Shown in pieces: positions 34,983 to 58,224 of a stretch of 64,000 bases of DNA (its first letter is position 1; the number at the start of each line of letters is the position of its first letter). The notes beneath the pieces are model-generated. The model ran no database searches. It was not told the origin of the DNA and saw only the letters and a program-made list of their open reading frames with translations. This stretch comes from Eukaryota sp. TZLM1-RC (taxonomy: Eukaryota; Protista; Metamonada: BaSk clade): contig JAUPSS010000004.1 of NCBI GenBank assembly GCA_040285825.1, positions 2,708,550-2,772,549 of the forward strand. Reading direction: 5' to 3'. The translations under genes were made by a program, and so were the position numbers.

Positions 34983-36033
34983 GTGGTTTGGCATTGGCAA
35001 GGTTTTGGTTAGAGTTTGGGTCTGGAATTGTATCACTAAAATGTATTCATAAAGATATTTAATTTTCTTGTATTGGGTTTTTCAATGGTTTTTACGTGTA
35101 ATTGTTTCCCAGAACAGAAGCTTTGGTCGTAGAATAAAGAAAACTTTACATTATGCAACACCAAACGACTGAATCAATACATTTTGCTTGAACCATATGA
35201 CCATTTCCTTACGAAAAAATTGTAAGTCCTATTGAGTGGGTTTTTGGCTAATATAGTGCTTAAATTGCTGTGCTCAACAATTTAAATTAGGGATCAGTTG
35301 ATTGGAGTGAATATTAATTTCTTGATTAATTTCCAAACACCTAAAATTTACTGATAAAATTCCTATTTTTATCAATTACTGTTTAAAAAGTGCAACTTAA
35401 TATGAGATGAACAGAACATTTGAACAATGACAAGCTATCAATTTAGAAGCTATCAATTTGGAACAAGTAAGAAGATGGCGTAAGGTAAGAAGAAATACAG
35501 GATCCCTTTAATGATAGTCAAACAATTGGAATATTCAGTTATGCTCTCATTCATGTTAAATCAGATGAATTAATCTTTTATATCCCTTTTTCCAATAACA
35601 ATGAAAACCACCGCATGTATAAGTGCTTGTAGTATATAATGTCATAAAGCTTCAAAGATTCTGCTTAACCGTTCTTTAAATGAGATACCCAGCCTTGACG
35701 TGGCCTGCCAGGTGGCATTTCTAAATGAGCATCATTTGTTTGTCAGCACCAATCCTACTTCAGTACCAGATGATTGAACTACAAAAAGACCCCAAAAGAG
35801 TCACAACAATGGCCGATACTTAATCTATTCTTGAAACTGCTCCATTACCATTAATTGAAGAAGTTGTCATAGAAGTGATACTGTTGTAATTGATGCAAAT
35901 GCTCCAATGTTATACTTTTTTGCAATTCATTATTAAAAGTAAAATTGAGAACCATGCCATACATACCAATAGATAATATTATATTAAAACTGTTGGGATA
36001 TTTTATTGTGAATTTCACTTATCATGCATTCCC

Positions 36034-36278
36034 CTGTGAAATTTACTCCTGTTTTCAACTTTCTCAATGTCTACTCACAGGCTGTAAGAGACATGTAACA
36101 TCATTTGACAAAGACAATCAGGATCTTCATCAATGGGCTACCTCACTTAAATACACCTACTGCTTTCACAGAACAAAGCCTCGCGACTTGATGTATCTAA
36201 CTGGATCTACCAAATGCTACTAAGGCATTTGTAGATCGGTCTCAAAAGATTTTGTTTCTGTATGCTCAGGTTCCCCAT
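36034..36278 (-). ncRNA. Putative Fanzor omegaRNA scaffold / right end of copy F2
   Basis: Lies immediately 3' of the Fanzor stop. Nested helices, two GNRA tetraloops (GCGA, GAAA), terminal TTTCACAG complementary to an internal CTGTGAAA. Confidence 0.75.
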
Positions 36279-36690
36279 TTATCTTCTCAACAGAGCATCT
36301 GGGCAAATGTATCTTTCCGGCCACAATTGTGCTTTCTTCTTAATTTGAATAATTTTTGGAGCGGAAATATCTCTGTCATATACTATTTGACACTCAGTAC
36401 AAAGACACATCTACCATGATCCTGCTTGAATATTCCCGGCCATGCAGCAACTTGACAGTTTGCTTGTATTAAATTCACTGGTTGGCAAGTGCTTCACGTC
36501 CTTTTGTTAACACAACCATTTTCCGAAAGGCCTTGCTGATCCCTATCGATTGATTTTTCGGCAATGAGAAGGGAAATTAACAGAACCCACAGCAAGATAG
36601 AGTTTATCAGGATGTCCAGTCAGCCTTTGAAATTTGTTGAGACATTCTCTGAACCGTCTCTCTTTTCGTCTACGGCTATCAAATTTAATT
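36279..36690 (-). pseudogene. Fanzor copy F2, C-terminal part
   Basis: My translation: KFDSRRRKERR..LYLAVGS..SEFNTSKLSSCC..CTECQIVYDRDISA..CPDALLRR, with three in-frame stops. Confidence 0.85.
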
Positions 36691-36774
36691 GCCTTTGAAA
36701 TCATTGATGAAATAGACTTGAAAATGCAAAAAACAATTCTATTAAACCAGAAAGTGGAATTCATTGTTTTACCA

Positions 36775-39700
36775 TTGTTTTAGATAAACTGAAAATACTT
36801 CATCCTTATGAAGACCCTATAATGGATCAAAATTTTTACGGCACATACTGGGAAAATTATCCATTGATGCCATCAGAAGTTTTTTCGGTTATCAAAAAGA
36901 GACCTCGTGGTTAGTCTGCCGGACTTTCTGGTATTACTATTGATCATGTAAAAGCCGCGATTATTTCTTCAGAAGATTGCCTTGGTTTATTGACCAAATT
37001 TTCCACCAAATATTATCTGGTCAACGCAAATACCCAGAAGAATTAAGAAGTTCTCGTTTGACTGCACTTGTCAAAAATTCAAAAATGGATGTTCGTCCTA
37101 CTGCAGTCTCTGAGAGCTTACACAATATTTTTTCTGCGTGTTGCTTGAGCAGGTTCAATGAAAAAGCTAAAAAGATTTTATTACCCTTTCAGTTTATTTT
37201 TATTCAACAACAAATATGAAATACACAATTAAAACTCCACATCCTCAAAACCTGCCTCCCCTACATCAAAACAATTAATCGCTAAAGATTCAGAAAATTT
37301 CCCAAAAGAAGATAGTGAATCAGAAATTAGTGTTACCATTCCCTTAAAAATAGAAAATACAATCCTGTTTTGCCAGTAAACACGATTGAAAATTCTTCCA
37401 GTTCTTTCCTTTACAACTACAACAAAATCCCCAAGGAAAGCCATAGCAGCCTTACCTAGAGATCCAAGCAAAGAAAAAACAAATGGACATAAATTATATT
37501 GGGCATGAGAATTTTCATTAACCGAGGAAATGGGTTTCGCATATTTAGCAATTTTATATTTTTCGCCTGCAAGAAGAGGATTATTTACATCCGAGTTAAT
37601 GAAATGTTCGTTAGAGGAATTACAAGGGTCAATAGACATGGCGTCCAAAATAGTAAAACTACCATTTAAACCAGGAACAACTAGATCCCCTCTAGTCAGA
37701 CCCATAGAAGCTCTGTTGTAACGCGTACTATCAATATTGGGATCATCAAGAATTAATTTTGATAACAGCGGTTCTAAAAAGGAATCTACACGATATGATA
37801 TGCACATTACATACCCTTTCAGTATGGTATAAATACTACAGATGGAGTCTCTTCAGCGATTTTTGCTACTGATGTCTTATTTCGTCAAAATGAATCCAAT
37901 GTTTGCATGTCATTGGATTTTAGCAATGCTTTCAATTCACTAAGTCGTCGCAGTATCCACGGTGCTCTATTGCAATATATGCCGGAATTATTACCATATT
38001 TTCAATCAACATATTGCACATATTCTAATTTACATTTTGGTAACAAAATTTTGAGTTCATCATGTGGCGTTAAGCGAGGAGATCCGTTAGGACCTCTTTT
38101 GTTTTGTTTGGCCATTCATCCTATTCTACTGCAAATTCAAGAGATGTTTCCTTCACTAAAAATGATTGCATATATGGATGATGTTGTGCTTATTGGTGAT
38201 TTAAATATTGTGAAAAAAGCAACTGTATGTTTTAAAGAATTATTTACCAAAATTGGTCTCCGACTTAATTTACTTAAATGTGTTTTGTTATCGAATTCTC
38301 CAGTTTCCACAATAATTGATGATATTGAAATTCAAGCCAAATTATATTCAATTGATGCTATTCGTCATTTGGGTTCGTTTTTAGGAAATAATGATGAAAT
38401 TACCAAAAAATTGTTTGAAAAGTTGAACTCAATTTCTGACAAAATTGACCGAATGATGAATTTAGTTATAAAACAACACATCAAATTTACCATTATAAGA
38501 CTGTGTTTTAATTCCAATTTTAATTATATATTTCGATCTACAAATCCTCTCGTCACTAGACCTTTGGCTCAAAAGTTTAATGAGTTACGTGCAAAAGTTC
38601 TGTCTCAATTACTGGGATGTAAAATCTTTCAAATTCCAGATCATGCTTACCTTAGTCCACATTATGGCGGTTTAGGGTGGACTAAGGCTTCTATTCTTAC
38701 CTCGTGTGCTTTTGTTGGTGGATGCAGAAATGCAATCTTTGAGTTTTCCGAAAGATTTGCAGATTGGGAAGATTTATTGATGACAACGCAAAGTTCCACT
38801 GTTTTTGCATTAAATGAAGAAATTTCAAGAATTGATGTAGAACAATGGGGTCGATGTTTTCCCCAATCATTCAATGGCAATATTCCAGGAAAAAAATTTT
38901 CAAATTTGAAGTACACTCTTCGAACATTACAGAAACGATTGACTGGAATGTATGAAAAAGATCTTTTTAATAATATATGCAGGTCGGCTGTTTTAAATCA
39001 AGATCTTCACTCATTGTTATTGGAAAAGGGTGTTTGTGAAAACAAGTCGTCAGATTCTTCACTTTTTGTAACCATTGTACCACGAAGATTTGGATTGTGT
39101 GCCACTAATGATGCATTTGTAACAAAAATGAGATTATATTTGAACATCCCCATTAACCAATTATTATCAAAAGAAAAATGTATTTGTTCGAATTCACCTC
39201 AACTCACTTTGCGTCATGCTCTGAATTGCTCTAAATTGATAACTTGTCGTTCTTCATTACATAATGCTGTTAGAGACACTGTTTTCAATATGGCACAAAC
39301 TGCAAGGATATCGTGTATCAAAGAGCCCCTGCTGAAGGAAACATTTCTCTGAATAATTTTGGTTCTGATGATAGAGGTGATATATACTGTGTTTTGATTG
39401 ATAATTCTGAAGCTATTGTTGACGTTGTCTCATGTAATGTTTCAAATGATACTTTGGTTGACAGAAGATAACTTAATTCTGTGGCTGCTCTGGATTTTAA
39501 AGCAAAAGAGAAACATAGAAAATATGATAAAGATATTGAAGAGGCTAATGTCGATAGAAAAACACAGCTGGTTTTTATTGCTTTCCCATTTTCGATAAAT
39601 GGAAGATTATCAGATGAAGTAGAAACTTTTTTGGATGACTTCCAAAAAATGGTGAAAGAAAATACAATGAAAAGATTTGATATTTGTTATGGCGTTCACG

Positions 39701-39868
39701 GATTCAATTTGCCATTATTAATAGATTACCGCGGTTTTTCAATCGAATTAGAGAAGCTTTAGCTAGACAGCAAGCAAATCAAGATTTTGTAGAGGAAATA
39801 TTGGTTTAATGATAGTCGTCCCATTAGTTATGATTTAATTTAATCAAGTGTGCAAATTCAATAAATAC
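36775..39868 (+). mobile_element. Family A retrotransposon, 5'-truncated
   Basis: 481-aa RT ORF with AYMDD; TSD TTGTTTTACCA at 36764-74 and 39869-79. Confidence 0.93.
37194..37811 (-). mobile_element. Family C retrotransposon 3' fragment inserted antisense in family A
   Basis: RGDLVVPGLNG..LDAMSID..KYKIAKY..WQNRIVF; TSD TACCCTTTCAGT at 37182-93 and 37812-23. Confidence 0.92.
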
Positions 39869-40092
39869 TTGTTTTACCAGACCTAATCAGTAACACTTTT
39901 TTGAAATTTTCAAAAAAGCGCAACCCTGAAGGTCCAATATTGCCAAAAAGAGAAATTACAAACGGCACAAAGAGATATTTCACATGTTCCACTCTACCTA
40001 ACTGTGCCAAAGGCTCTTCATATTTTTTTATCTTCTTTTTTTCGGCGTTAGATAACGGCGAATCAGCGGAATACACTAAACGAGCAGCAGAA

Positions 40093-41168
40093 TCTATTTT
40101 TCAAACTTTTTCTGTTGATATTAAATTTTTTGTAAGGACATTGTTTGAATATTCGTTTCAGACATGTATTTTTGATAAACTTTGTTTTGGAAGATAATCC
40201 TTCATTAAGTGGAAATTTTTTCACAGAGTGGAAAACATGTGAAGGAACCTCAAGCAATTTAGAACCTTTAGGAGAAGCTAAAGGTATTATTCTAAATTTC
40301 TTCCAGCAATGTATGTGAGAAAAGAAAGTGAATATGTATTGTGAAATTTTAAGATTAAAGAGAAAAAGCTCACCAATTTCTTTTGATGAAAAGGTGATTT
40401 TATCATGTGAGGACAGAAGGGACGCAGTGGTAGGAAATCTTTGCAGAAGATTCAAGATAAACTTACATGCATTTATTAAAAGAATCTTTCTCTTGAGTTA
40501 TTCAGATTGAGATTGATGTAGTGTTCAAGAACAGAATCAACAACTACTTCCTTGGGTTGGGCTAATGGTTCATCTGGCAAAAGTGAGAGAATATTAGTGG
40601 CAAAGACATTTGTTTCATCTAGAGCTCTACAATGAGCACGAATAAAATTTTTTGTCCAGGATCGACAAATTTTAGGTAAACTTGTCTTCACGTTAGACTC
40701 CAATTGACGAGCCCGACATGCAAGGTGAGGAGAAAGTCCTTTTCTATTGATAAAATTACAATTTTGAAACTGCAGCCAATCATTGAGAAAAAGATTGAAT
40801 GATTTTTTGTAAGGCACTAAAGAATTTTCCCACAAAGAAACAAGAGACCTGTCTTGTGGGCATTCAGGAAGAAATCCACTGTCAAAGATATGGAGTAATT
40901 GGCGTTGGCCTTTAGATGTGGAAAGCTTTGGAAAAGAACCAGTGGTGATGACGGTCATAAACAGATGTCATACATCCTGTTCCACTAAAGCTCTAGATGC
41001 CAACAGAAAATTAAGAAGAAAAGATTGAAGCAATAAAGAAGCTTCATGACAAATCTCGGTGACCAAAGGAAGGTCAGCCCGAATTTGTTGCACCGCAGGA
41101 GGGGTCAGCAGGGAGTTAAGTGCACAAGACCGAATGAATACACGTGACACAGAGTGGGTGTCTGACAT
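40093..41168 (-). pseudogene. Fanzor copy F2, N-terminal (WED/REC) part
   Basis: FIRSCALNSLL..VTEICHEASLLLQSFLL and KKFRIIPLAS resemble the Fanzor1 N-terminus and its F-x-x-x-P motif. Same strand and correct order relative to 36279-36690. Confidence 0.65.
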
Positions 41169-41401
41169 GTAATGAGAATAAAGACCTCATCTATCAAATT
41201 TTACACTTGTCAAACCATTTTCGACTTCTTGTTGCCTGTTCTGGAGGGTTTTAAATCTCAACTTGGTTTTGGGAGGTTTTCACTATTCCCACACTTTCCC
41301 CTTACTTCATAAACTATGTTCCTATATCCCTCACTCAACTTCTATCTATTACTCCCCAGTTCATGCCCCACTACTGGCCCTCCACAAACTGCAACTTATG
41401 C

Positions 41402-41902
41402 TGAAAAGTCAAACTTACCCCTGGTCCAGACAGAATACTACAAGCAGAACTACGCCTACCACCAGGGAGGTGGCAGTATAAGTACATAGTTGACGCAGAA
41501 TGGAGATACTCTCCTGCTGAACCAATACTCAGAGATGCACTTGGAAATGTAAATTACATTGTAGAAGTGCTACCAGATTGTCAAGATTCGCCTGTTTCAG
41601 TCTCTAGATCTATAGTGTTTGGCCAAGAAGTGCCTGAACTACCATCAAACTCTCCAGAAGCGTTACCACCTCATCTTGCCAAAACAGTATTAAACTCTAC
41701 TATTCCAGAAAAAATAGATCCGTTGCTGATGCCTTTACCCCAGCACATTACCATTAATCATCTGTATGTTTGGCCACGGCGATCTGTATTGATGCTGGGA
41801 ATGTCAATGCGGTATAAAGGAAAAACTGTGACGACTGTACTGTACAAACCAATGCATGAAGAAATGATAAAGAATTTACAAAAAGATTTAGCATCAAAAT
41901 AA
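41402..41902 (+). pseudogene. AMPK/SNF1 beta subunit, 5'-truncated (part of CBM48 plus the AMPKBI domain)
   Basis: LPPGRWQYKYIVDAEWRY in frame upstream of PEALPPHL..LPQHITINHLY..RYKGKTVTTVLYKP. Confidence 0.8.
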
Positions 41903-42183
41903 ACAAAATTACTCAATTTATTTGTATTATTTTCTTTGGAACAACTTCTTTATCTCGATGTATTCGTAAAATATTCTGAATAAATAATTTACGTTCTGCA
42001 GAGTTCAATCTATTTGTTTCAGTGTTTACGTTCAAATGTTTGGTCAAATTTGGAATTGCTGCAGTAAGTGCGCAAAGCTGGAGTATAAATTGCATTAAAA
42101 GAGATCAGTAGAATAAATGTGTATGAAATTGGTTTCAGAAATGCATTTTGAGTGAATTCCAGATCCTATTCACATACCAAATT

Positions 42184-43490
42184 ATACCAATATATCTCCA
42201 GTATAGAGAAAAAACCTTATCATATCTCTCCTGTTCCAACCACTGTGGGTCCAGGATATTTTCCCATTGATACAAGAACAATATGGACAATTATTAGACA
42301 AACATTGATGGACGATTTGTTGCCTGATCAGAGATTAAAAATGTCCAATACATTAGCCCAAATTACGAAATTCAAACCACCTCAGTAATTTGACTTTTGG
42401 TCTAATATTCTCGATTTAAACCAACCAATGTTCAAACAAAAGATTTATAAATTCAACAACATTATTCACACAGATGGATTTAATATTGCAGTAGAATTTG
42501 TTCGTCGGGATTTACAAGGTCAGAAATGTAAGCCAGACAACAAGGCAAGTATTTCTGATTTATATATTGATGATGTTGATGTTGATGCTTTTCAAGACAA
42601 ACGAATTGTTGTTTGTGATCCTGGAAAACGTGATTTATTGTATTTTGGGAGCAAAAAGACTGATCAAGAACTAGCCATGGTGCCTGAACATGAAACTGAA
42701 CAGCAAAGAAATAGTCGGGTGATGAATCAAGACAAGAAGTACAAATGGTTGAGAATGACTCAGATGTCCTGGTCTTTGAAAAGTAGGATGAATGAAAAGC
42801 AAAAACGATGGGCGACAAAGTATATTGAGGTAGAATACGACAGGAACCAAATGATAGAGTCTAACGAAATGACAATTGAAGATGCAAACACCGAATTATC
42901 AGCATTTGCTGCAAGTTCGGCGACTTTTATAGACTTTTCCAACTTTGTGGTTGCAAAACTTCGGCAAGTTTTTTTGACAATTGACTTTTATAGTCTTGAC
43001 TTGTGGAGCATTCATGAAATGCAAGCTTTTATTCACAAGCAAAAGACTGAAAGTTGGTTGTTAAAAAGCCTTGTTCAGCAGTTTGGCAATCCGAAAGACA
43101 CTTTAATACTAATGGGTGATTATGGTAAAAAAGGTTCCAAGAATTTGAAACATCAAAAACCGAGGTATTGGATGGATTCAATTTCTGAAAAGAAATGGTT
43201 TTGAAGTATTGATGATTAATGAAGCTTTCACTTCAGCAAAATGTCCTGTTTGTTTTGAAAAGGTTGCTACGTTTTTGAGAGTAACAAATCCCAGAGTGTA
43301 TAGAACAGAAAAGACTCCTGTTACTACATGTCATGGTTTATTAGCGTGCAACAGTGACAGTTGCAAACTCAGTAACCAAGGCTCAACAAAGCTTTTCAAT
43401 AGAAATAAGCTGGCTTGTTTGAATATGTTTGCAATTGCAGAAGCCAGAATGAGTGGCAATGAAAGGCCTCAGTATCTGTGTAGTAGATAG
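42184..43490 (+). pseudogene. Fanzor copy F3, 5'-truncated, with one in-frame TAA and one frameshift
   Basis: FPIDT, IHTDG, RuvC-I VVCDPGKRDL, LILMGDYG, INEAFTSAKCPVC, CHGLLAC, RuvC-III NRN (D>N), terminal RPQYL. Confidence 0.92.
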
Positions 43491-43546
43491 TTTTTGTAAT
43501 TATTCCACACGACAATTGATTGTGTATTTATGGCAATTTCCCACAG
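43450..43546 (+). ncRNA. Putative omegaRNA 3' part / right end of Fanzor F3
   Basis: Hairpins TATCT..AGATA and ACACGA..TTGTGT; ends AATTTCCCACAG. The 5' boundary is uncertain and probably overlaps the ORF. Confidence 0.55.
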
Positions 43547-43609
43547 TAAAAGTTTCAAGTTCAACTGAAAGAACAAATCCCCATCACTTCTGTCGAATAC
43601 ACCCAAGGA

Positions 43610-44335
43610 ATGAACTCACTCAAGGAAGTCTCCTCTTTTAATTTCAAAGGCTCCTACAACGATGACGTTGTTGTTAGGTTTGGCTTTTTACGTAAGGTAT
43701 TCCTTCTCTTCATCTTTCAACTTGCAGTTACTGCTGCCCTAGGGTCTTACCTCATCTCCTCTGGCATGATTATCAATCTATCCTCTGGATTCATGCTGTG
43801 GTGTAAAATTATTTTCTTCTCATCTCTCATTGGTACATATGTCTTCAAACGAACCTTTCCGCTCAACCTCGTCCTGCTCTCCTCTGTCACAATCACCACA
43901 TCCATCCTCCTCTCCGAGGTCGTGTCTTATGTTGATCCCCAAACTGTTATCTTTGCTCTCGTTCTATCCACTCTTTTCTTCACTGCTCTTACCGCTCTTT
44001 CTTTCCTCTCCTCTTCTTCTGACTTCCTTGGAGAAGCTATTATTGCTGGTATTCTCATCTCAGTCTTCACCATACCGCTCTACAAGATCTACTTTCCAGA
44101 AGTAGATGGTCTTGAAATTGGTCTTTCTTTGCTCAGCGTGTTGGTGTTTGGTAGTCGTGTCGTTTTTACCATTAAAAGAGTTGTTAGGAGTTCTGATATT
44201 GATGATTATGTTTATGCTGTGGTTTTAATTTACTCTGATTTTATTTCAATGTTTTTGAAAGTTTTGAGGTTCATTGCTTCGACGAAAGGAAATAGCAAAT
44301 GCAGATCTGAACGTAGCAAAAGTAAAAGAAGATAA
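43610..44335 (+). CDS. Bax inhibitor-1 / TMBIM (lifeguard-type) membrane protein
   Basis: VRFGFLRKVF..QL, FPLNLVLL, DDYVYAVVLIYSDFISMFL; about 7 hydrophobic helices. Confidence 0.88.
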   Translation: MNSLKEVSSFNFKGSYNDDVVVRFGFLRKVFLLFIFQLAVTAALGSYLISSGMIINLSSGFMLWCKIIFFSSLIGTYVFKRTFPLNLVLLSSVTITTSILLSEVVSYVDPQTVIFALVLSTLFFTALTALSFLSSSSDFLGEAIIAGILISVFTIPLYKIYFPEVDGLEIGLSLLSVLVFGSRVVFTIKRVVRSSDIDDYVYAVVLIYSDFISMFLKVLRFIASTKGNSKCRSERSKSKRR

Positions 44336-45140
44336 GAAAAGGAAGATGATTAGTTTTGTAAATAGATAATAAACTGTTGTTTCTATTTATAGAATTTTTT
44401 TTCTACCTTTCATCAATAGTAATTATAAGATTACAATACAAATTAATTTGACAAGAAAGAATTTTTCGAAATTGTTTACCATAAATACACATGGCCACCT
44501 CAAATAAACAAGATGATACCGGATTTAATCGTTTTATCAACTAAATTATAATTGGTTTTATTGATCCAAATCATTTTTTGATCGCAGCCATTTCATTACT
44601 TTCTGATGATGTTTCCTTAATAGGTTCTTGTCCTGTAATGCAACAAATTTGTTTGGAAGTTTGGATTCTCGAATTGGTCTTGACCTTAATCCTTTGAAAT
44701 GCCTAGTTCTTGGAAGACAAAAGGGTGAGTAATTGTGTTTGAGATGGTTCAATCTATTTTCTTCTATCGCTCAACGTAAAGGGATAGAACGAATGGCAAT
44801 TGGAGGTACGATTATGGGAAATGTTAATTTTTCATTAATCGTTAATACCCTGGTCATGTATTTCTGCACCAAGGAATAAGGATAGCGAGTATTATTGATT
44901 TTTCTATCAGGTTGGTGGCGAATCCATATAATACAGAAGTATTTGATTATACATTGTTGGTTCCTAAAACTGAAAAAATACACTAACACTTCACTACAAG
45001 CAAACGAAAAATGTACAGCATAAAGATTTCAATCAGTCTATGCTTTTTCAATTGACAACCACTAGGAGAATGTCTACAACCACCTATCTACCATCATACA
45101 GTTTTGATTGTCTCATCAAACTTAATCAACATTATTTATT

Positions 45141-45998
45141 TTTTTTAAAAACTGGAATATTTATTGAGATAAAAAACCCCATCTAGAATTCAATATCCTC
45201 CAAACAAGCGTCACTATTACTAAACCTACTCACAGCATTACATTCATATTCTACACCAATAGCTAAAAGTGCCTTTTAAATCATTGTTGGAATAGACTTG
45301 AAAATGCAAAAAACAATTCTATTTAACCACAAAGTGGAGTTCATTGTTTTACCAGACCTATTCAGTAACACTCTTTTGAAATTCTCAAAAAAGTGCAACC
45401 CTGAAGGTCCAATATTGCCAAAAAGAGAAATTGCAAACGGCACAAACTGATATTTCACATGTTCCGCTCTACCTAACTGTGCTAAAGGTTCTTCATATTT
45501 TTTTATCTTCTTTTATTCGGCGTTAGATAACGGCGAGTCAGCGGAATACACTAAACGAGCAGCAGAAATTTTGCAAACATCAACAGAGATAACATCTACA
45601 ACATTGAGAACACCATCGATTCCTGGAGCTACTAAATCTGCCCTTCGTTTACCAAAGGAATCATCCGTTTGATCTGAAGACAGCTTACGTACTAGTGGCT
45701 CAATAAATGCCTCTATATTGATACTTTTGCACATGGCATATAATTGATCACGAACTAAGTCATGAACAATTGAGCGATAAGTTATAAAATACTTACAGTT
45801 TAAAATAAGGGAAAGTGTAACAACACTCTTGCAGCGACAAATTAAATCATTTGGTAATGAACAAGGCCATAAAAAACATCTCATTCTCATTGCAGTGGTC
45901 CATTGGTGATCATTAAGTAGAAGGCCATAAATGTTGGGAATTTGGGAGATTAAGCAACTTGAGCAACTGTCTTCAAGATCAATCAAAAAGTTTGCAAA
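45141..45998 (-). mobile_element. Family B RLE retrotransposon, 5'-truncated
   Basis: CRC..LNC knuckle and RRADLVAPG..VDVISVD; TSD AACATTATTTATT at 45128-40 and 45999-46011; the empty site is visible at ~53858-70. Confidence 0.93.
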
Positions 45999-46444
45999 AA
46001 CATTATTTATTCTAATATTCTTCACCATTTTGAGCACAAACATTACTAAAAATGTCTTTTCAGTTTAACCAAGTAAAGATTAGTTTCATACAAATCATAG
46101 AAATGAGGAGTTTGCAGAGGAAATTTTGAGTCTGTGAATGTCGTCCATTCGTTCTGACTTTATTTTCTCAAGTATACAATTTCAATAAAAATTAGCAGCA
46201 ATGTATTCATGATCTCTGAAATATATTGTTTATATCCAAAATTAAACTTAAATTGCAAGCAAACTGTACAAAACCATAATAAAGAAAAGAATAAAAGTAT
46301 TATATAAAATTTCCGATGCCTGACTAGGATCAATATAGTGAAAAAATACAAAGCTTAAGTTGAAAATGCAAAAATAAAAATTAAAGAAATAAGTAAGTAA
46401 AAATAAACCAAAAACCGCTACAATGGAAAATACCCTAGAGAAAA

Positions 46445-46762
46445 CTAGTACTGAATTGGTTGGAAAGGAAGGAAAGTAATCTCATAAATGATACGTAGGG
46501 CAAAAGCAATGATATTGACTCCAAAACTGATAAGAGCGAGAACACTTTCGACCTTGCGCTTGGCTTCGTTGGCATAAATGAAAGCCAATACGCATAGGTA
46601 TACGGAGGTTATGTGTAGGAACATGATGGAGACACGCCAAGCAGATGGTATTCCTCCGCCGTATCCAACAACAAAGTCAACAAGAGCCAAGGAAAAGAGA
46701 AAAACAGCAAGGACAAGACTCATGTAGAGCCAGTGCTGCTTTGTGCCATAGTTTACCTTCAT
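46445..46762 (-). CDS. Small 3-TM membrane protein, function unknown
   Basis: Three hydrophobic segments, conserved in the duplicate copy. The start at MKVNYG is inferred; the ORF is open further upstream. Confidence 0.6.
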   Translation of the reverse strand: MKVNYGTKQHWLYMSLVLAVFLFSLALVDFVVGYGGGIPSAWRVSIMFLHITSVYLCVLAFIYANEAKRKVESVLALISFGVNIIAFALRIIYEITFLPFQPIQY

Positions 46763-46802
46763 TAAATCATTTGTAAGAAATTTATGCAATATTTCATTCA
46801 TC

Positions 46803-47288
46803 ATGAATTCACATGATCTGCAGCAATTACAGCAGCGCTTTCCAAATGGTGACCCAGTAATCATTGAATTTGTGTACAACGGAGAGGGCGCTCGCTCAGT
46901 TACTAAAACCTCTCACATTCTCAAGCAGATGTGGACACAATCGGTTGCTGATCATGGTACGCCAATCTGTCAACTCATCAAGCTCAAAGTTTCCATGGAA
47001 AGGGTTTTGGCAAACCAAGCTTGTGCAGCAATTGTTTATAAGGAATGTAATGCTTTTCTCTTACATTTAACCACATTGATTTCTCAAAAGTCTATCTCTG
47101 TGTTACATATGAATGAAGATGATTTAGACTTGATAGAAGTGCTTCAAAGTGCAAGTATTTTGCCCGTTAAACTGGTTTGTGGTAGTGGTAATGTTTTGAG
47201 TCAAGTTGAGCGTTATTTGGAGAGCAATATGCCCAATGCGTTCATTAAGGATCCTATTGAGGAAGTGTTTTACGTAGGTTGTGATTGA
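46803..47288 (+). CDS. Short CUE plus divergent Smr-like protein
   Basis: LQQRFP CUE-like N-terminus; C-terminus VLHM..VKLVCGSG..VERYL. Confidence 0.5.
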   Translation: MNSHDLQQLQQRFPNGDPVIIEFVYNGEGARSVTKTSHILKQMWTQSVADHGTPICQLIKLKVSMERVLANQACAAIVYKECNAFLLHLTTLISQKSISVLHMNEDDLDLIEVLQSASILPVKLVCGSGNVLSQVERYLESNMPNAFIKDPIEEVFYVGCD

Positions 47289-47577
47289 TTGAATATATTC
47301 TTTGTTCTGTCTTGTAAATGGTTGTTTTCGGTTTTTGGTCTCACTGTCAGCTTACACTTAATGATAATGCTCTAATTGTTGAACCTGAGCAGAGAAAATC
47401 TCTTAGTTGTGGGATAATTTGACAAGGGCTTTGCTTTAACATTGGCATGTAATGATAGTAACAGTTTATTGTTTTTGATCGGAGTATTGACTCAATACAT
47501 TATAGATTTATAGTGGAATTGTATTGATGGCGTGTGATGAGAATTGGGAGTCAAAGTCACTCTTGATTGTTGTTGAT

Positions 47578-47859
47578 ATGCGTCACCTAGTCGTCTTTTT
47601 GTGTTTGGCATGCATTTTGTGCTTTGCCACAGCTTCCAGTCCTGCTGAGGACACTAGCAACTCTAAATGTTTGGAGTGTAAGTCTAATCTCCGAACAATC
47701 CAACATTGTCCTAACTGGGAGTTCTGTGGTATCCGATGCAATGCACTCCACCCAGCCTATCACAAAGCATGTCTTGGTGCTTGTTATAATATGCTAGCAG
47801 ACAGATGTCCATTATCCTTGTGCATCAACGAGAGCTGCATAACATATGGATTCTGTTAG
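47578..47859 (+). CDS. Secreted cysteine-rich saposin-like protein
   Basis: Signal peptide followed by a CxxC..C-x10-C..C-x5-C (CITYGFC) pattern. Confidence 0.6.
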   Translation: MRHLVVFLCLACILCFATASSPAEDTSNSKCLECKSNLRTIQHCPNWEFCGIRCNALHPAYHKACLGACYNMLADRCPLSLCINESCITYGFC

Positions 47860-48549
47860 TTATTCTGTGTTGTTTCAATGTATATGTTTCTTGTTCAATA
47901 AATTCTTTTTTGTTTTGCTCATTACATTACGTTTTCTTTTTAACAAAACAGTGGATGTGTTTCATTCATTTTCTGAACATGTGTTGGTTTGGTTGATCTC
48001 ATAATCTCAACACCATGGATGCCAAAACTAAATTAGGATAGCTTGGACCAATAAGTTATTGGCAACAACTGTCTTCTTCCTTTCATTTGCCTTATTCTAC
48101 ACATGTTAGAGGAGAAATTATTGTGGCACAAACAATTTCCTTCTGTGAAGCTGGGAAATTTGTTTAATATAAATCCTTCATTACAGATGTCATGAAATTG
48201 GACTCATTTTATCCCTATTTTAAATGACACCGTGTGTTATGTATGATACATGTTCCAAAAAGTATTCTTGAATTTGCTGACTTTTATATTATAATCAAAC
48301 ATCAGAGGAAAGAGAAGTAGCAGAAGTCCCATCAATTGCCTTGATTTCAAATTGATAAGAACTCAAAAATCTTTGGCGTTTTTCCCAATGATCGAGAACT
48401 TGCCAGTAGTGTAAATTCTGTCCCAAAAAGTTCATCTGTTTTGCAAACACAAATTCCTCGCGGTTAAAACGTGGTGCTTATGGTACTTTTGATCACTTTT
48501 TTTCCTGCTTTAAATTCACTCAAAAAAGATCAATAATCCACAACACAGT

Positions 48550-49160
48550 TCTTGATTGTATTTATGATCATTTAAAATGGCCTCATCATCCAGTTCGTTA
48601 AGAACCTCAGTTTGATGAATTAAATTTTACTTTGAGCCAAAAACGAGGTGATATTCAATGTGCATGGTATGATGGAACTGAACTAATTATCGATTGTACT
48701 ACCTTATCTCCGTGGAAAAGAAGTTCCGTTTTTGACATTCAACATTTACTCAAGGCTGCTGAGCTGTTCAAGAAATAAAACTACGAAGCTCTTCTACAAC
48801 CTCTGAATGGGGCTAGGGGCAGAAACATCAAAGTTGTCCCAATTGCTATTTCTATTTTTGGTACCCTTGGAACTGAAGGTCTCAATTTTTTAGATGACTT
48901 AGGAAATCTTCTCAAAGATAGTGGTCGTGCATACGATTTTTTGATTTGGAAGAACAGAATTGTATTTTCGCTATTGAAGGCTCTTCCTCGTTTTATTAAC
49001 TCCATTTTGAATAACACTACGGAGTTTTATAACAAGCCAGTTGTTATTCCAGTGAATATTGAAAATTTCCCGTCATTCAATTGATGGGGTTTGAGTAGGT
49101 AAAAGTATTAGTTGAGGTTTTTGGTTGAGTTTTAAAATGTGGCTGTTCCAGGAATAAATT
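48550..49160 (+). mobile_element. Family D RLE retrotransposon 3' fragment
   Basis: My translation: KRGDIQCAWYDGTELIIDCT..VVPIAISIFGTLG..IWKNRIVF, followed by a 3' UTR with AATAAA. Confidence 0.8.
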
Positions 49161-51615
49161 CTCTTTTTGATCAAAAATTAATGATGCAGTTAGGGATCAA
49201 CTCAACTGTATGTCAAAGGCACAAAAAATTGTCTTCTTTTTAGAACCATTGCTCTGTCGATTTGTTGATGAAACTTATTTGAATTCTTTTGGTCGCAGTA
49301 AAGATGATTTAATGCTTGAAAGTCTTGAAGGTCCATCATTAATGATTATGACGGAAAAACTTCCAGTAAATTCTTTTTGGCTGATTTAAGGTTTCAAGAT
49401 TCAGAATTTTAAGTTTGTTGTGCAATTTATCGAAATAAATGAACTGAACTTTTGCGATTACAAACTTTTTACTAGTGTTAAATGATCTCCTCCATCTGAG
49501 CTGATTACGTACATTTTGGTCCATCAAATTAGTTAATTAGTTCTTTTTGGTATTTTCATTGTGTTTCCAACATTGAAATTAAAATGACGAAGACAGAATG
49601 GACTCTGACGAGAATGATCAATTCTTGGAACAAATTTTATCATCATTTTCTTGGGCAAATGGTCACTTTCAATCCCAGAGTTTCAACACACAGGCAGATT
49701 ACGTGACAGTCAGAAGTGATAAACCTCCCATCAATTGTTAATGTCACACTGTTGTTCAAAATCCCTGTTACAGAATCATTATTTTTTTTGATCCAGCAGT
49801 TGGGAAATTCAAAATTTGTTAAAACCAACAATAAGGCTGTTTCAATGGTAGGTGGAGACAAATAAGCACAAGTTGGACAAACTTCCTTGTCATAGAATAA
49901 CAATTGCAATATCGTTGCTGATCCATGGCTGTTTATAACATAGTTTGGCTGGCTACTTGTTGAAAACGAATCGTCTCCCAAAGGTATCTGATACATAATA
50001 AGTCACGTTACAGGGTCTGTAATTGTGACTCCAAATGTATATTTGTGGTGTAGTTGTTCTTAGTATTTCTGTGATTTTCATTTGGTTGCATATTTACCAC
50101 TTATTTTGAGCTTTTCATCAATGATCTCAGACAGACCTGATAGCCTCGTTTCATTGGGTATGAGCAAGTGTTAGAAAAGTGGTAGGTTTGCAATTTAACA
50201 GACAACTGTAAGCTCCGTATGACGTAGCTTAATGACCTATAGTTATAGATAGTTTGTGACATAAAATAAATCTTCTTCTTTTCTTATCCCAGATAGGGTA
50301 ACACAGCAAAATGAAAAAATTTCAAATCATCACACTGTGATCCTCAATTCAAATGAATTATCATCACATTGCTTGTCTTTTCACTCACCCAATAAATTTA
50401 TGTTTTCTTTCCTCAATATAGCCAATGCATCCTCCATCAAGGTATAACTGATGCTGCAACTGTACGATGGTGCCCGTGCCTTCTTTCAACATGAAATATC
50501 TCTTTATTTTGACAACTGCTTTACCGCAGTAGAACTTCAGGAAGCTGCTCATCAATTTTTCCACTCCCAATTGTCTGCAAAGAAAAAGAAGTTTAACAGT
50601 GACTGGCAACTTGAAGTCAAATACAAGTCAACCGGCAGCCAGTTTCGTCCAGGAGTAACCTCCACGATAGCTGGATGGATTTCTGCGCACAGTGGGGAAG
50701 GTGTAGTTTTTACAATCAAGAGCAACCCCATTGATGTGGACAAGGAGACCGACAAAATCTGGCAGCAAGAGCAGGTACAACAAGACGTTATCCAAATGCC
50801 AGTTGAAGACTTGAAAGAGCTCAACATAGGTGTATCGGCTCCATTGGCCATTTGGAAATACTGGGCCTCTCTTGTGGAGAAGCGTGAGGCTTCTTCTACT
50901 ATTATACCTACCGATTTATCTCGATATTTCAATTCTGGCAAGCAAAAGGTCTTCTTTGACCAAAGAAACAATAACGGATACCATTGCAGTTGACAACATT
51001 AGGCGTGGATTTTAATCATTGTTGATTGATTTGTTAAAAGCAGCCTGTAACCAGCGACTAAGAGTTGACTGTGAAATGCAGAAGTATTGAGCTATATAAG
51101 CCTGTGGTTTGTTAAGAAACAAATAGATATAACAGGCCCAACCTTAGTGTCCTCAGATGCATGGACCCTTAAGGACGCAAGCTCTTGTGAAGACAACAGC
51201 AAATCGTATGTATACCCCATAAATAATATTGATTGTCTGTCTGTTAGTTTTGTTAAATATTATGGCAATAAAAAGCTCAATACTGCAAAAGTTTATTGAT
51301 AAAGACATTCTGTCCCAAAAGAAAGCAGGTTGATGTAAGACGTATAAGGTCTCTGCTTATGAAGTTTTTGTGATGACATCATATCTCCTCTGTTACAAAA
51401 GAAGGAAGGATGATCTTAAGTCGAACTGATATAGAATTACTGACGGGTTTAGCCCTACTTCTTTGTCAATAAAGGCTATGTATAACTTGTGAAAGAGCGT
51501 TTTGTGGGGTGAGTGAAAACTGAGTGAGTAAAAACAGTTTGTACTCACAACCGACTCAAAAAGCGATCCTCAGCAGTAAATAAATGTTGAATTTTTCCTC
51601 GCAACCATCAACATA

Positions 51616-53141
51616 ATGAACCTCGCCTCCAGCTTTGGCAATCCTATCAACTTTGGCTCTCCATCAAGTAAGCGATTATATGACTTAAAATGTCTACGAA
51701 ACGAGTTCAAAAAATATGATGTTCATCGCCAAATTGAAATCATCCACGATGAGAACGGTCAAGACATCACCGAAAGTCGACTTGCTTTAAAAAGAATAAT
51801 ATCATCAAGAAGTCACTTGACCCCACTTGAAACACTACCACCAAGATCAGCAAGAATAGATCATTGGAGACAGGTGGAGCAGACGCGAAATGAAATCAAA
51901 AAACCTAAGGGTCAAGTTATGCAATGAAGCTTCAAATACAAGGCTTAACTGAACAATTAACCAAAAAAGACGCTGAAAACCAAGAATTAATATTACAAAC
52001 GTCAAGACTCAATCATGGTAAAAAAGATAATGTTGCCATTGACTTTAATTCTGTACTTCCAAAGCTGCTATCTAGTAGTCAACTGAGTGACCAACGGTTA
52101 GTTTTCAAAGGAAAGACTTGTAATTCTCATAGAGCCATTTTATCACTTTTTTCTGGTTATTTTGAAATGTGTTTCTCTCAACACTTTGTAGATTCAGAGG
52201 AGCATGAGTATGATCTAAGCGATGATTTGCCAGTTTCTAATGAAATTTTTGAAACTGTTTTGAATTATTTCCCATTTTCGATAAATGGAAGATTATCAGT
52301 TGAAGCAGAAACTTTTTTGGATGACTTCCAAAAAATGGTACAAGAAAAAACAATGAGAAGATTTGATATATTTTTATGGCGTTCACGGATTCCATTTGCC
52401 ATTATTAATAGATTACCACGGTTGTTCAATCGAATAAGAGAAGCTTTAGCTAGACAGCAAGCAGATCAAGATTTTGTAGAGGAAATCTTGATCCAATGAC
52501 AGTCGTCCCATTAGTATTGAGTTAATTTAATTAAGTGTGCAAATTCAATAAATAAATTTTTATTATTTGTATGGGCAAGAAGTCATTTTGAGTGTTGATA
52601 ATTGTTACGAAATTATGTTTTGTGCAAGATTTCTCAAAATTCCATGTTTGTATGAAAGCTCTCTTAAACAAATTCAGGATAATATTCATTTATCTGGTTT
52701 TCTTACCTCATTGATCATCAAAGCAGAAGAGTGTGGTGATCACCAAATTTTCAGGGAACTAACAGGGCAAACAGAAGGTGATATTCCTGCTTGTTTGAAG
52801 GAGTTATTGCCCAATGTGCATGATTTTGAATCCTTATCTCCTATGATTCTTAGGAAAACAATCTTGCAGTTCTTAGTTTCCACTGAATACAACAATTCCA
52901 TCTATATTGAATGGCTTTCCTGTTCACTAGTGAAGTCGTATTTAGAAGCAACAAGTGAATGGTCTAGCCATTAATTTGGTGAATTGCTTGATTCTATTAA
53001 TGTCTCAAGCTTGACTGCTTCAAAGTGTCGAAGTTTGGTTGTTGATAAGTTGGTTGAGTACAAGGAACTTGAAGTTATCATTTCCTTGTTCTTTATCAAA
53101 AAAGTTTTGCCTTCGTGTGATTTGTGTTTTTGTGCTAAGTA
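51616..53141 (+). pseudogene. BTB/POZ-domain gene disrupted by a retrotransposon
   Basis: HRAILSLFSGYF..FETVLNY|LYGQEVILSVDNCYEIMFCARFLKIPCL is restored when 52271-52568 is removed. Confidence 0.85.
52271..52561 (+). mobile_element. Short family A 3' insertion
   Basis: Family A C-terminus plus 3' UTR; TSD ATTATTT at 52264-70 and 52562-68. Confidence 0.9.
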
Positions 53142-54303
53142 AGAACAGGTGGTCTAGTATTTTTGCACTTAATATAGCATTCATCTTTTTGAAGAGAACA
53201 GTTTCAAAATAACTACTAGCCTCTTTTGCAAATAATAATTAATGTCATAGAATTGAGATGATCTCCTTCGTCGAATTTGTTTTGTGTGCTCTAATTTACC
53301 ACTCAAAAGTAAGGACAATCCAACAACGAAAATTTTTCCGCATATACAACTTTGTAACCAATTGAATGCAAATTCTTATGTTGATGTCAAGCGAGAATAG
53401 CTTGTTAAAGTAACATTGAACCAAAACAGTTTTCCATCAGATTTTGCAAAAGGGTGAGTAATTGTGTTTGAGATGGTTCAATCTACTTTCTTCTATCGCT
53501 CAACGTAAAGGGATAGAACGAATGGCAATTGGAGGTACGATTATGGGAAATGTTAATTTTTCATTAATCGTTAATACCCTGGTCATGTATTTCTGCACCA
53601 AGGAATAAGGATAGCGAGTATTATTGATGTTTCTATCAGGTTGGTGGCGAATCCATATAATCCAGAAGTATTTGATTATACATTGTTGGTTCCTAAAACT
53701 GAAAATATAAACTAACACTTCACTACAAGCAAACGAAAAATGTGCAGCATAAAGATTTCAATCAGACTATGCATTTTTAAATTGACAACCACTAGGAGAA
53801 TGTCTACAACCACCTATCTACCATCATACAGTTTTGATTGTCTCATCAAACTTAATCAACATTATTTATTCTAATATTCTTCACCATTTTGAGCAAAAAC
53901 AATTCTAAAAATGTCTTTTCAGTTTAACCAAGTAAAGATGAGTTTCATACAAATCATAGAAATGAGGAGTTTGCAGAGGAAATTTTGAGTCTGTGAATGT
54001 CGTCCATTCGTTCTGACTTTATTTTCTCAAGTATACAATTTCAATAAAAATTAGTAGCAATGTATTCATGATCTCTGAAATATATTGTTTATATCCAAAA
54101 TTAAACTTAAATTGCAAGCAAACTGTACAAAACCATAATAAAGAAAAGAATAAAAGTATTATATAAAATTTCCGATGCCTGACTAGGATCAATATAGTGA
54201 AAAAATACAAAGCTTAAGTTGAAAATGCAAAAATAAAAATTAAAGAAATAAGTAAGTAAAAATAAACCAAAAACCGCTACAATAGAAAATACTTCAGAGA
54301 AAA

Positions 54304-54621
54304 CTAGTACTGAATTGGTTGGAAAGGAAGGAAAGTAATCTCATAAATGATACGTAGGGCAAAAGCAATGATATTGACTCCAAAACTGATAAGAGCGAGA
54401 ACACTTTCGACCTTGCGCTTGGCTTCGTTGGCATAAATGAAAGCCAATACGCATAGGTATACGGAGGTTATGTGTAGGAACATGATGGAGACACGCCAAG
54501 CAGATGGTATTCCTCCGCCGTATCCAACAACAAAGTCAACAAGAGCCAAGGAAAAGAGAAAAACAGCAAGGACAAGACTCATGTAGAGCCAGTGCTGCTT
54601 TGTCCCATAGTTTACCTTCAT
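54304..54621 (-). CDS. Small 3-TM membrane protein (duplicate)
   Basis: Same protein as 46445-46762. Confidence 0.6.
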   Translation of the reverse strand: MKVNYGTKQHWLYMSLVLAVFLFSLALVDFVVGYGGGIPSAWRVSIMFLHITSVYLCVLAFIYANEAKRKVESVLALISFGVNIIAFALRIIYEITFLPFQPIQY

Positions 54622-54661
54622 TAAATCATTTGTAAGAAATTTATGCAATAATTCGTTCATC

Positions 54662-55810
54662 ATGAATTCACATGATCTGCAGCAATTACAGCAGCGCTTT
54701 CCAAAGGCTGATCCTGATGTCATTCAGTTATTTTATGGAGAGTGTGGTCACTCGGTTACCAAAACCTCGCATATGCTGAAACAGATGATGGCAGAATCGG
54801 TCCCCGATACTTCTTCTCACCTTCAACATGCACATGAATTTCCCCCGCAGAACTTTGATCAAGAATTTCGTCCCACAGGTGATACTCTACAAGGATGTTA
54901 TCCTCATGTTAGTTCATCAACCACATATGAACAACATTATCCCCCATTAGGCGATCAAACTGTTCACAGCAAGGGCTCTGTTCCAAACCATCCATCTTCT
55001 GGCAATAGTTCTTTCCGTGATGATTTCTATCGGAATGGCAACTATTCCAGTAATTATAATCCCCAACATTCTCCCACTAAGGCGATCCATACATCACCCC
55101 AAAGAGGCGTTGGTTCTCAACTCAACCACACCACTCCCCAATCACATCATGGTACAGGAAGTAGCAGCTCTAACCATAAAGCTCAGTTAACACCACATCC
55201 TCAATCAACCCAACGTTCAATGTCTACAGAACAAGTCCTAGCCTCAGGGTCTCCATCAACGCATTCAACTCGTATACAAGCCAATAACACTATCAGTCAG
55301 CAACAACACAAATCCCAATCAAAAACAACTCAAAAGGCAATGAACTCTGCTCCAACGAAATCTAACCCCAACCCCAACCCTGTCCAGAGGTCACCATCTT
55401 TAAATGAACCTGAAAAAGGTGATGTGCTTCTTAACCCCTCTGATCCTGGTCTAGGTCTACCACCACTTGCTGATCATGGTATGCCAATCAGTCAATTAAT
55501 CAAGCTCAAAGTTTCCATGGAAAGGGTTTTGGCAAACCAAGCTTGTAAAGCAGTTGTTTATAAGGAATGTAATGCCTTTCTCTTACATTTAACCACATTA
55601 ATTTCACAAAAGTCTATATCTGTGTTACATATGAATGAAGATGATTTAGAGTTGATAGAAGTGCTTCAAAGTGCAAGTATTTTGCCCGTTAAACTGGTTT
55701 GTGGTAGTGGTAATGTTTTAAGTCAAGTTGAGCGTTATCTGGAGAGTAATATGCCCAATGCGTTCATTAAGGATCCTATTGAAGAAGTGTTTTACGTAGG
55801 TTGTGATTGA
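54662..55810 (+). CDS. CUE, low-complexity linker and divergent Smr-like domain protein
   Basis: CUE-like LQQRFPKADPDVI; S/Q/H/P-rich linker; Smr-like C-terminus. The architecture recalls Cue2/N4BP2. Confidence 0.55.
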   Translation: MNSHDLQQLQQRFPKADPDVIQLFYGECGHSVTKTSHMLKQMMAESVPDTSSHLQHAHEFPPQNFDQEFRPTGDTLQGCYPHVSSSTTYEQHYPPLGDQTVHSKGSVPNHPSSGNSSFRDDFYRNGNYSSNYNPQHSPTKAIHTSPQRGVGSQLNHTTPQSHHGTGSSSSNHKAQLTPHPQSTQRSMSTEQVLASGSPSTHSTRIQANNTISQQQHKSQSKTTQKAMNSAPTKSNPNPNPVQRSPSLNEPEKGDVLLNPSDPGLGLPPLADHGMPISQLIKLKVSMERVLANQACKAVVYKECNAFLLHLTTLISQKSISVLHMNEDDLELIEVLQSASILPVKLVCGSGNVLSQVERYLESNMPNAFIKDPIEEVFYVGCD

Positions 55811-56026
55811 TTGAATATATTCTTTGTTTTGTCTTGTAAATGGTTGTTTTCGGTTTTTGGTCTCACTGTCAGCTTACACTTAATGATAATGCTCTAATTG
55901 TTGAACCTGAGCAGAGAAAATCTCTTAGTTGTGGGATAATTTGACAAGGGCTTTGCTTTAACATTGGCATGTAATGATAGTAACAGTATATTGTTTTTGA
56001 TCAGAGTGTTGACTCAATACATTATA

Positions 56027-56192
56027 CTGTGAATTTCTATCAAAACGCACTTCTGGCTTTTGACCAATTCATGCAATCTTGATAGACGTTAAGCTTACTT
56101 TAGTTCTATCACTATATGATATCACGATCAAATGATAGTTAAAGCAGCAACAGCACAATACGCGTACAGGTACGCAATACATGGAAAAACAG
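56027..56192 (-). ncRNA. Putative omegaRNA scaffold / right end of Fanzor F4
   Basis: Three hairpins (GCGTA/TACGC, CTATCAT/GTGATAG, TCTATCAAGA/TTTTGATAGA); ends AAATTCACAG exactly where homology to the paralogous locus begins. Confidence 0.75.
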
Positions 56193-57484: not shown

Positions 57485-58224
57485 GGGGTGAATATGTCAG
57501 TCGAGAAAAGATCAGACAGTCAACAATAAAAATTTGATTTATTCACAACCTCTTACATCTATACAAATACAAAGCCTGAGCAAAATGATAATTAAACACT
57601 ATAATACGTGATAATTAAGCTGTCGCAACTATTTTCTTTCGTGAAAAGGTTACAGTTGAAGGAGTTTTCTCGGTGATAACATTAGCATATCCAATCAAGA
57701 AAACGTGTTGTTTCAATGAGTTCGTATAAAGTTTTTTTTCATAATGTGATCAACTTGACACTTCTTTAATCTTTAAATAGGAAACCACTTAACCTAACAA
57801 TGACTCTAGACAGGACAACATTCACAACTTCTCTCTTACACGAACTCTATCTTCTCCGATGTGAAGACTTGACAACGTCAGCGAAAATAACATTTCTGAC
57901 TCCCTTACACCTACAATTGTCTCGTTCCTAACTAACAATAGTACGCTGACCACATTCGCTCTTGGCCTTTTTCCTATGAACCAACTTAAGTAGACAAAAG
58001 CTTGATTTCTTAAGTTACTTCGAAACTATACATTGTTCTTCAACTTTCGCTTTCGCTACTGGTGATAATGTATTGAGATCAGGTTGTTGCATCGGACTCA
58101 TAGGTATACCAGCACCTTCAGTACCCTTTCCAGCAGCCTTTAGACTGTCAGCAGTGGGTTCAATAACTTTGGTTTGATACTGTTGTTTCTTAAACACCTC
58201 TGATCTCTTTCTTCCATTCAGAAT

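Follow-up and report, generated by a model that had tools for sequence, protein, structure and literature searches.

The right ends of several families of Fanzor (TnpB-like) elements are considered here as they appear in a 64,000-nucleotide stretch of the genome of Skoliomonas strain TZLM1-RC (assembly GCA_040285825.1, contig JAUPSS010000004.1, positions 2,708,550 to 2,772,549, forward strand; "the window"). Two of the families, designated F2 and F4, end in the same 11-nucleotide (nt) motif, GAAATTCACAG, in the company of a predicted stable hairpin, and the DNA that follows starts with T, usually TA; a third family, F1, probably shares this end. The F3 family, on the other hand, belongs to a separate Fanzor clade and has an end of its own. 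Taken together, the observations somewhat favor a reading in which the F4, F2 and probably F1 elements carry a selected right-end module that would serve these non-autonomous elements both as transposition end and as boundary of the omegaRNA scaffold.

Skoliomonas is a soda-lake protist; strain TZLM1-RC is included in the description of the genus, which comprises anaerobic, haloalkaliphilic metamonads (PMC11603281), and S. litria is listed among the isolates sequenced (10.1101/2023.05.03.539051). The window is AT-rich (33-41% GC) and crowded with retroelement copies, as mapped by blastn of the window against itself. Sister copies of the Fanzor elements are drawn from 12 fetched loci (L001-L012), and each family is judged on four to five copies. 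The families themselves are larger: the F4 cluster has 28 members, and searches with F3 and F2 return 45 and 32 matches, respectively, nearly all of them in TZLM1-RC. Sequence searches detect relatives of these families only in Skoliomonas, in agreement with the proposal, made in a preliminary description of this DNA, that they are lineage-specific.

That description also proposed that F2, F3 and F4 share one terminus ending in CACAG, and placed it at 36034 (minus strand), 43546 (plus) and 56027 (minus). All three strings are to be found at these positions. The pattern that unites them, AATT[TC]{0,3}CACAG, occurs three times in the window when both strands are counted, and every occurrence follows the C-terminus of a Fanzor gene on the same strand at a distance of 56-250 nt; block shuffles yield a mean of 1.4 occurrences per window. 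The pattern was defined post hoc, and the real test of it therefore lies in the sister copies. Conservation stops at CACAG in F4, but runs 28 nt past it in F2 and ends 2 nt short of it in F3.

The F4 element (56027-58234, minus strand; located by blastn and alignment against L001-L003) provides the simplest case. Across its four copies (window, L001, L002 and L003), identity is 97-98% up to and including GAAATTCACAG (56027-56037, minus) and all alignment is lost from the following base, exactly at the proposed boundary; the flank of the window copy begins TA. RNA folding places a subterminal hairpin just ahead of the motif (56037-56085, minus). Full-length F4 is 2.87 kb. Compared with the intact copies in L001 and L002, each with an open reading frame (ORF) of 637 amino acids, the window copy lacks ~28 nt at the 5' end and ~620 bp internally; what remains of its coding sequence (56196-57496, minus; six-frame reading and match to PF07282) is a 339-amino acid frame followed by a 136-amino acid C-terminal frame with zinc finger and RD motif. 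At its left end, full-length F4 has three copies of ATTCTG within 45 nt and TA before it (L001 2211-2260; L002 2207-2256). The window copy, which starts ~28 nt further in, keeps only the third of these repeats.

A paralogous pair of segments bears on the same boundary. Positions 46945-47504 and 47552-48297 (segment A) match 55467-56026 and 59489-60235 (segment B) in a self-comparison by blastn, and the homology breaks on the F4 side exactly between CACAG and TATA. Thus, the earlier contention that a paralogous locus confirms the F4 boundary holds in that the break falls at the same base, but segment A is not a simple empty site. The block that is present in B and missing from A consists of F4 (56027-58234) together with 1.25 kb of non-Fanzor DNA (58235-59488). 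Segment A was rejected as a clean empty site because a host pseudogene is missing from it as well, and because 47 bases without a match (47505-47551) stand in it opposite F4 and that pseudogene. The pseudogene, of a RAI1/DXO-like PD-(D/E)XK nuclease (58204-58689, plus; PF08652, E 1.5e-7), is oriented head to head with the left end of F4, and one paralogous segment has it while the other does not.

The F2 element is split by nested retroelement insertions into a 5' part (40091-41324, minus; blastn against L009 9627-10868 and repeat map) and a 3' part comprising a C-terminal coding remnant and a tail of ~276 nt (36006-36690, minus; blastn and alignment with L008 and the two copies in L009). Full-length F2 is 2.78 kb, and the window copy has frameshifts. 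Identity of 95-96% among the copies in L008, L009 (two) and the window continues for 28 nt beyond the first CACAG, to 36006. The sister copies diverge after a second GAAATTCACAG, where the window copy reads CACAA. The true right end of F2 is accordingly 36006, and the boundary first drawn at 36034 was off by 28 nt. Position 36034 falls within a terminal hairpin (36008-36046, minus; from folding of the L009 tail and from the alignment), in its 5' arm; the arms are GT(A/G)AATTTCAC and GTGAAATTCAC, the loop is 17 nt and, in the L009 tail, the stem 11 bp. Each arm is formed by one of the two motif copies, and the 5' arm overlaps at its 3' end with the first CACAG (36034-36038). The arms have the look of a direct repeat because the motif is palindromic in itself (GTGAA-A-TTCAC).

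Once the ends are placed in this way, those of F2 and F4 are identical over 11 nt. The flank begins with T in eight of eight copies and with TA in seven of them. An exact search for GAAATTCACAG in 276 kb (the window and the fetched loci) returns eight matches, seven of them at Fanzor ends and one within a retroelement ORF, against ~0.2 expected by an estimate from base composition. F1 is represented in the window by a fragment of F4-clade type (3-1907, minus; 90-92% by blastn comparison with L006, and motif scan) whose 3' end lies outside it. The tail of F1, as seen in L006 (minus strand, ending at 15202), has GTGAAATTCTCAG, and F1 probably shares the F2/F4 end motif. In alignments of the F4 tail with that of F2, and of F2 with F1, the best local match is in both cases the terminal 14-19 nt and nothing else; the non-coding tails of the three families are otherwise unalignable, and no common alignment of tails across families extends beyond these last 14-19 nt. 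A further family, F6 (L006 5313, 7432), was considered as an additional test of the boundary and set aside, its copies sharing flanking sequence and resembling a local duplication.

Could the likeness of such short strings be due to chance? In F3, the terminal CAG does arise by coincidence from the flank, as set out below. But an identical 11-mer recurs at seven independent loci of F2/F4 type, exactly where the copies diverge; as judged from the sister copies, chance is already refuted for F2 and F4, and as a general explanation it is very improbable. The motif has stayed constant while the proteins fell to ~29% identity and the tails diverged beyond alignment, and it is therefore to be regarded as a selected cis-element.

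The F3 end is of a different kind. The window holds the 3' 1.36 kb (42187-43544, plus) of an element belonging to a ~4.3-kb family, with one frameshift and one in-frame stop (blastn against L004, L005, L006, L010 and L011; six-frame reading). Agreement among the copies in the window, L004, L005, L010 and L011 ends with AATTTCC(C/T)A(C/T), at 43544 in the window, and the bases next to this end in the four close copies are AG, AA, GC and CC. Since these differ, the element ends at 43544 and the AG at 43545-43546, which had been taken for the end of a terminal CACAG, is flank; CACAG is absent at this place from the sister copies. The right end thus reads GGCAATTTCCC followed by AC (43532-43544, plus; from five-copy alignments and sister-species tails), and the consensus end of the family, GGGAATTTCCC, is a palindrome. 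Two F3-like tails of the sister species TZLM3-RCL end in a similar ...TGGRNWAWYCCAT, after a hairpin of different sequence. (A CACAG does occur 68 nt behind one sister-species F3-like gene, L012 5408, with an F3-type end 28 nt upstream of it; it is probably there by chance.) The claim of a terminus common to three families consequently stands for F2 and F4, which have the same 11-mer, but not for F3, which ends differently and without CACAG. As far as sequence goes, the F3 end resembles GAAATTCACAG in form only: a palindrome GNGAA-W-TTCNC, followed by two bases. F3 has its own end, GGGAATTTCCC-AY, likened to the others only by a palindrome of GAA-W-TTC type placed 2 nt from the terminus.

One tail seems to connect the two kinds of end. 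A divergent F2-type tail in L002 (40-130, minus; ~84% identical) has its last 25 nt replaced by an end that contains GAATTTCCACA and is more like that of F3 type, and this one copy hints at exchange of ends between families.

That the tracts in the window follow Fanzor genes is concluded from several comparisons of the proteins. A profile built from five Skoliomonas C-terminal regions matches SpuFz1 (PDB 8GKH) over ~230 positions with E 4.5e-14, and SpuFz1 is the best match among solved structures; the C-terminal frame of F4 contains the Cas12f1-like TNB domain (PF07282, E 3.7e-7). (A single sequence used as phmmer query gives no match.) The assignment of these tracts as Fanzor right ends is thereby upheld. 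Alignments show a DPG-like RuvC-I motif in each family (CDPGKRD in the F3 clade, IDPNHKN in F4, VDLGQSR in F2). The shifted RuvC-II Glu beside the zinc finger (E-x6-[CH]-xx-C, with CxxC pairs) is matched exactly by EAFTSAKCPVC of F3 and more loosely by DEFYTSAKTNCC...CPQC of F4. RuvC-III is RD-x5-N (SRDIS...N) in F4, F2, F1 and F6, with Asn (RN) instead throughout the F3 clade. F2 and F4 proteins are ~29% identical over the C-terminal half, and identity between F3-type proteins and F4 is 19-22%. The three proteins had been called barely alignable; their identity is indeed low (19-29%), but sequence comparison places them in two clades (F4/F2/F1 and F3), so that they do not amount to three unrelated families.

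The F3 clade has features of its own. Arg-Asn replaces Arg-Asp at RuvC-III (NRNKLACLNM), and the RuvC-I DPG and the shifted Glu are retained, so that the clade, as aligned, lacks the third catalytic RuvC aspartate. The substitution is found in two Skoliomonas species and in several families (window 43149-43490; L004, L005, L010 and L011; L012 5079-5408 and 10718-11080; P0127, P0274 and P0279); in L004, an Asp precedes the RN. In full-length F3-type elements, exonuclease motifs of family-B DNA polymerases (PF03104, E 4e-8 and 1e-11) are also present in a same-strand region further upstream, seen at L010 6944-11697, L006 7804-11669, L005 7862-12002, L011 7603-11095 and L012 2133-5408 and 6691-11089. 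In intact proteins of TZLM3-RCL (1096-1281 amino acids) ExoI (DLET), ExoII (NSNNFD) and ExoIII (YCFQD) are fused to the Fanzor part. Matches to the full-length exonuclease-Fanzor fusion are named only in Skoliomonas, and a literature search found no published description of such a fusion.

The shared end may be understood in part through the guide RNAs of TnpB and Fanzor, for which the scaffold is encoded at the right end of the element and the guide is taken from the flank; in SpuFz1, a scaffold of 75 nt is combined with a guide of 14-15 nt (PMC10432273). "Ghost" elements of Spizellomyces punctatus share similar ends with the SpuFz1 loci (PMC10432273). The Skoliomonas elements are comparable with these loci (Saito et al. 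2023, PMC10432273) in being multicopy solo-Fanzor elements whose related families have similar ends. At SpuFz1 the conserved right end doubles as omegaRNA scaffold with the variable guide just beyond it, and the Skoliomonas end may, by analogy, play the same role. The two differ in that SpuFz1 loci are bounded on each side by a 30-nt inverted repeat; at the level of DNA, which is what is compared here, the Skoliomonas elements have none above chance, and their 5' ends are ragged. The last 234 nt of F4 fold with -61.8 kcal/mol (z -2.6 relative to shuffles) and the F2 tail of L009 with z -4.8; a scan of the window with Rfam returns two tRNAs only, with no match for the Fanzor tails. A stable hairpin, a fixed motif and then variable DNA starting T(A) fit the TnpB/Fanzor picture, and on that analogy the motif would mark the junction between the omegaRNA scaffold and a guide whose sequence is copied from the flank.

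The other part of the proposed function concerns mobility. Full-length F4 and F2 contain no transposase, the Fanzor ORF being their only gene, which bears out the remark that no transposase is linked to them; no recombinase family (serine recombinase TnpA) is present among the genes called in the 12 fetched loci. The motif is probably also the end recognized by an enzyme that moves the elements in trans. The 3' ends are exact in F4, F2 and F3. The 5' ends vary between copies by 8 nt to more than 500 nt, with three distinct 5' ends in four copies of F4, four in five of F2 and four in five of F3. Duplications at the junctions are 13 nt (the F2 copy L009a), 5 nt (the full-length F3 in L010) and TA (F4 in L002), with none elsewhere. 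L009a sits within the conserved tail of another Fanzor family, flanked by the 13-nt duplication TATGGA(C/G)AAAATC, and affords the only clean comparison of a filled with an empty site (L009 9120-9260 and 12000-12110 against L001 7389-7553). Elements run CCAATT...CACAG or TTGTTC...CACAG, without CTRR. As regards terminal inverted repeats, head and tail give inverted matches of 5-6 nt, no better than shuffles (with F4 heads started 2 nt inside the end); the full F4 terminus gives a 7-nt match, judged not significant.

Exact 3' ends combined with ragged 5' ends in all three families, junction duplications of variable length and a hairpin directly ahead of the end could also be accounted for if the motif were a transposition signal only, i.e., the 3' terminus for a trans-acting rolling-circle enzyme (Helitron2-like, HUH) or another end-specific enzyme working by one-ended transposition, with no guide-RNA role. 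Bao and Jurka describe this combination in Fanzor1-bearing non-autonomous Helitron2 elements of Chlamydomonas, under the term "one-ended transposition" (PMC3627910). Like CRe-1, 2 and 3 of that group, the Skoliomonas elements have a constant 3' end with subterminal hairpin and frequent 5' truncation, show target-site duplications, differing in length, in some of the copies but not in others, and encode no transposase. Unlike CRe-1, 2 and 3, they lack the CTRR end, asymmetric terminal inverted repeats above chance and the T-rich target, and no Rep/helicase gene that could be the partner is seen in any of the fetched loci. Moreover, ragged 5' ends could equally result from later deletions, a compact genome protecting only the gene-side end. 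A signal of this sort is also compatible with an omegaRNA, since both roles normally use one end. A role in transposition alone is possible, at perhaps one chance in a few.

IS607-type TnpB and Fanzor2 elements offer a different comparison. In IS607 the recombinase fixes the first base of the right flank (10.1101/2023.08.09.552727). The Skoliomonas elements resemble, for example, ISXfa1 (Yoon et al. 2023, 10.1101/2023.08.09.552727) in having no inverted repeats, in the fixed first base or bases of the right flank (here T, usually TA) and in short repeats near the ends (the three ATTCTG at the F4 left end); the guide RNA of ISXfa1-type elements runs across the right end, and the same would be expected in Skoliomonas. 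Unlike IS607, they are linked to no serine recombinase in the fetched loci and show duplications of 13 and 5 nt, which IS607 does not make.

Retroposition, in which the shared 3' end would be a tail recognized by the reverse transcriptase of a retroelement and the copies would be 5'-truncated and intron-less, is quite unlikely. Elements encoding reverse transcriptase abound in the window, the 5' ends are ragged and there is one 13-nt duplication. But the Fanzor elements have no A-rich or repeat tail, most copies have no duplication and the 5' end is defined, and common to them, in the longest F4 copies, where it carries the three ATTCTG. The retroelement of the window ends in ...GCAAATTCAATAAAT and not in CACAG, and its 3' end was for this reason rejected as source of the motif.

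The position of the elements relative to host genes raises further alternatives. Of the 13 copies examined, eight have the start codon of a same-strand host gene 0-90 nt beyond the right end (in a ninth, L004, the distance is 311 nt); the gap is 65 nt for the window F3, which precedes a Bax-inhibitor-like gene, 18 nt in L008 and 22 nt in L003. Another Fanzor family (C-terminus at L001 7180-7437, tail of ~85 nt) ends in ...CTGTAATA directly before host ATGs. Seven unrelated genes have a copy of its ~85-nt unit (76-94% identical between copies) that ends directly at their called ATG or no more than a few bases from it (L001 7488-7560; L002 6018-6081; L004 15602-15673; L005 4047-4121 and 20590-20690; L009 12034-12103; L010 1133-1197). 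In L001 and L009 the unit continues upstream into a Fanzor C-terminus, and it is therefore the right end of another Fanzor family.

Such docking suggests that the end could be kept as core promoter or initiator, and leader, of the downstream host gene, the motif reflecting that use. The initiator consensus of trichomonads is TCAYW, which TCACA resembles (trichomonads are another metamonad group, and the consensus may not hold here). However, F4 and F2 of the window face convergent genes and yet keep the motif, and F3 and the start-codon-docked family carry other ends. Maintenance by promoter use is thus unlikely, if somewhat less so than retroposition.

Finally, F2 and F4 end in AG and the elements often lie in the leader of same-strand host genes, and the preliminary description accordingly raised the possibility that the terminal CAG is a spliceosomal acceptor by which the element is spliced from host transcripts. 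Introns inferred from gene models argue against this. They are 29-34 nt long, begin with GT and end in TAG, CAG or AAG, with no CACAG among them (L008 12353-12382; L004 11539-11572; L005 5733-5764, minus; L011 16532-16560, minus), and an intron of 2.8 kb would be far outside this range. The left ends of the elements begin with CCAATT or TTGTTC rather than GT, and F3 ends without AG. The idea finds no support and is the least probable of those considered here; an origin of CACAG in a metamonad-type intron end was likewise rejected when the local introns were read. IStrons (TnpB with a group I intron; 10.1101/2023.11.20.567912) embody a similar idea, a TnpB-type element that removes itself from host RNA, but nothing resembling a self-splicing intron is present in the Skoliomonas elements, and the spliceosomal version failed the tests that were run.

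A number of observations weigh against a selected right-end module with two functions, and temper the preference for it. All three window copies, F2, F3 and F4, are pseudogenes; the F1 boundary comes from one copy; and the further Fanzor family just mentioned (L001 7180-7553 and solo tails) has a quite different end. The F3 tail folds no better than shuffles (z +0.4), and five F2 tails yield one compensatory change in 86 predicted pairs, the copies being too alike for covariation to be informative. A bolder scheme would draw F3 in as well: one trans-acting enzyme would read the GNGAA-W-TTCNC palindrome 2 nt from the end, move several Fanzor families of Skoliomonas that are unrelated in other respects, including the F3 clade, from this fixed 3' end and set them before host start codons, with the same bases forming the guide-adjacent end of the omegaRNA. 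It is speculative and rather improbable, more so than a signal for transposition alone.

Elsewhere in the window, a tRNA-like gene of 119 nt is present twice within a repeated 8-kb block (9745-9863 and 18009-18127; Rfam tRNA, 43 bits). A 119-nt stretch adjoining these genes recurs at 42065-42183, just to the left of the F3 remnant.

Conserved ends among related transposon families are to be expected, and in this respect the finding is modest and fairly ordinary; the docking of elements at start codons and the exonuclease-fused Fanzor clade without the third RuvC aspartate are more unusual features of this genome. A mapped right end nevertheless locates the putative start of the Fanzor guide, which is the first thing needed for nuclease tests, and intact natural copies exist for these in the 637-amino acid F4 ORFs of L001 and L002. 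The identity of the motif at ~29% protein identity points to a shared trans-acting partner, and so may provide a handle on the mobility of transposase-less Fanzor elements.

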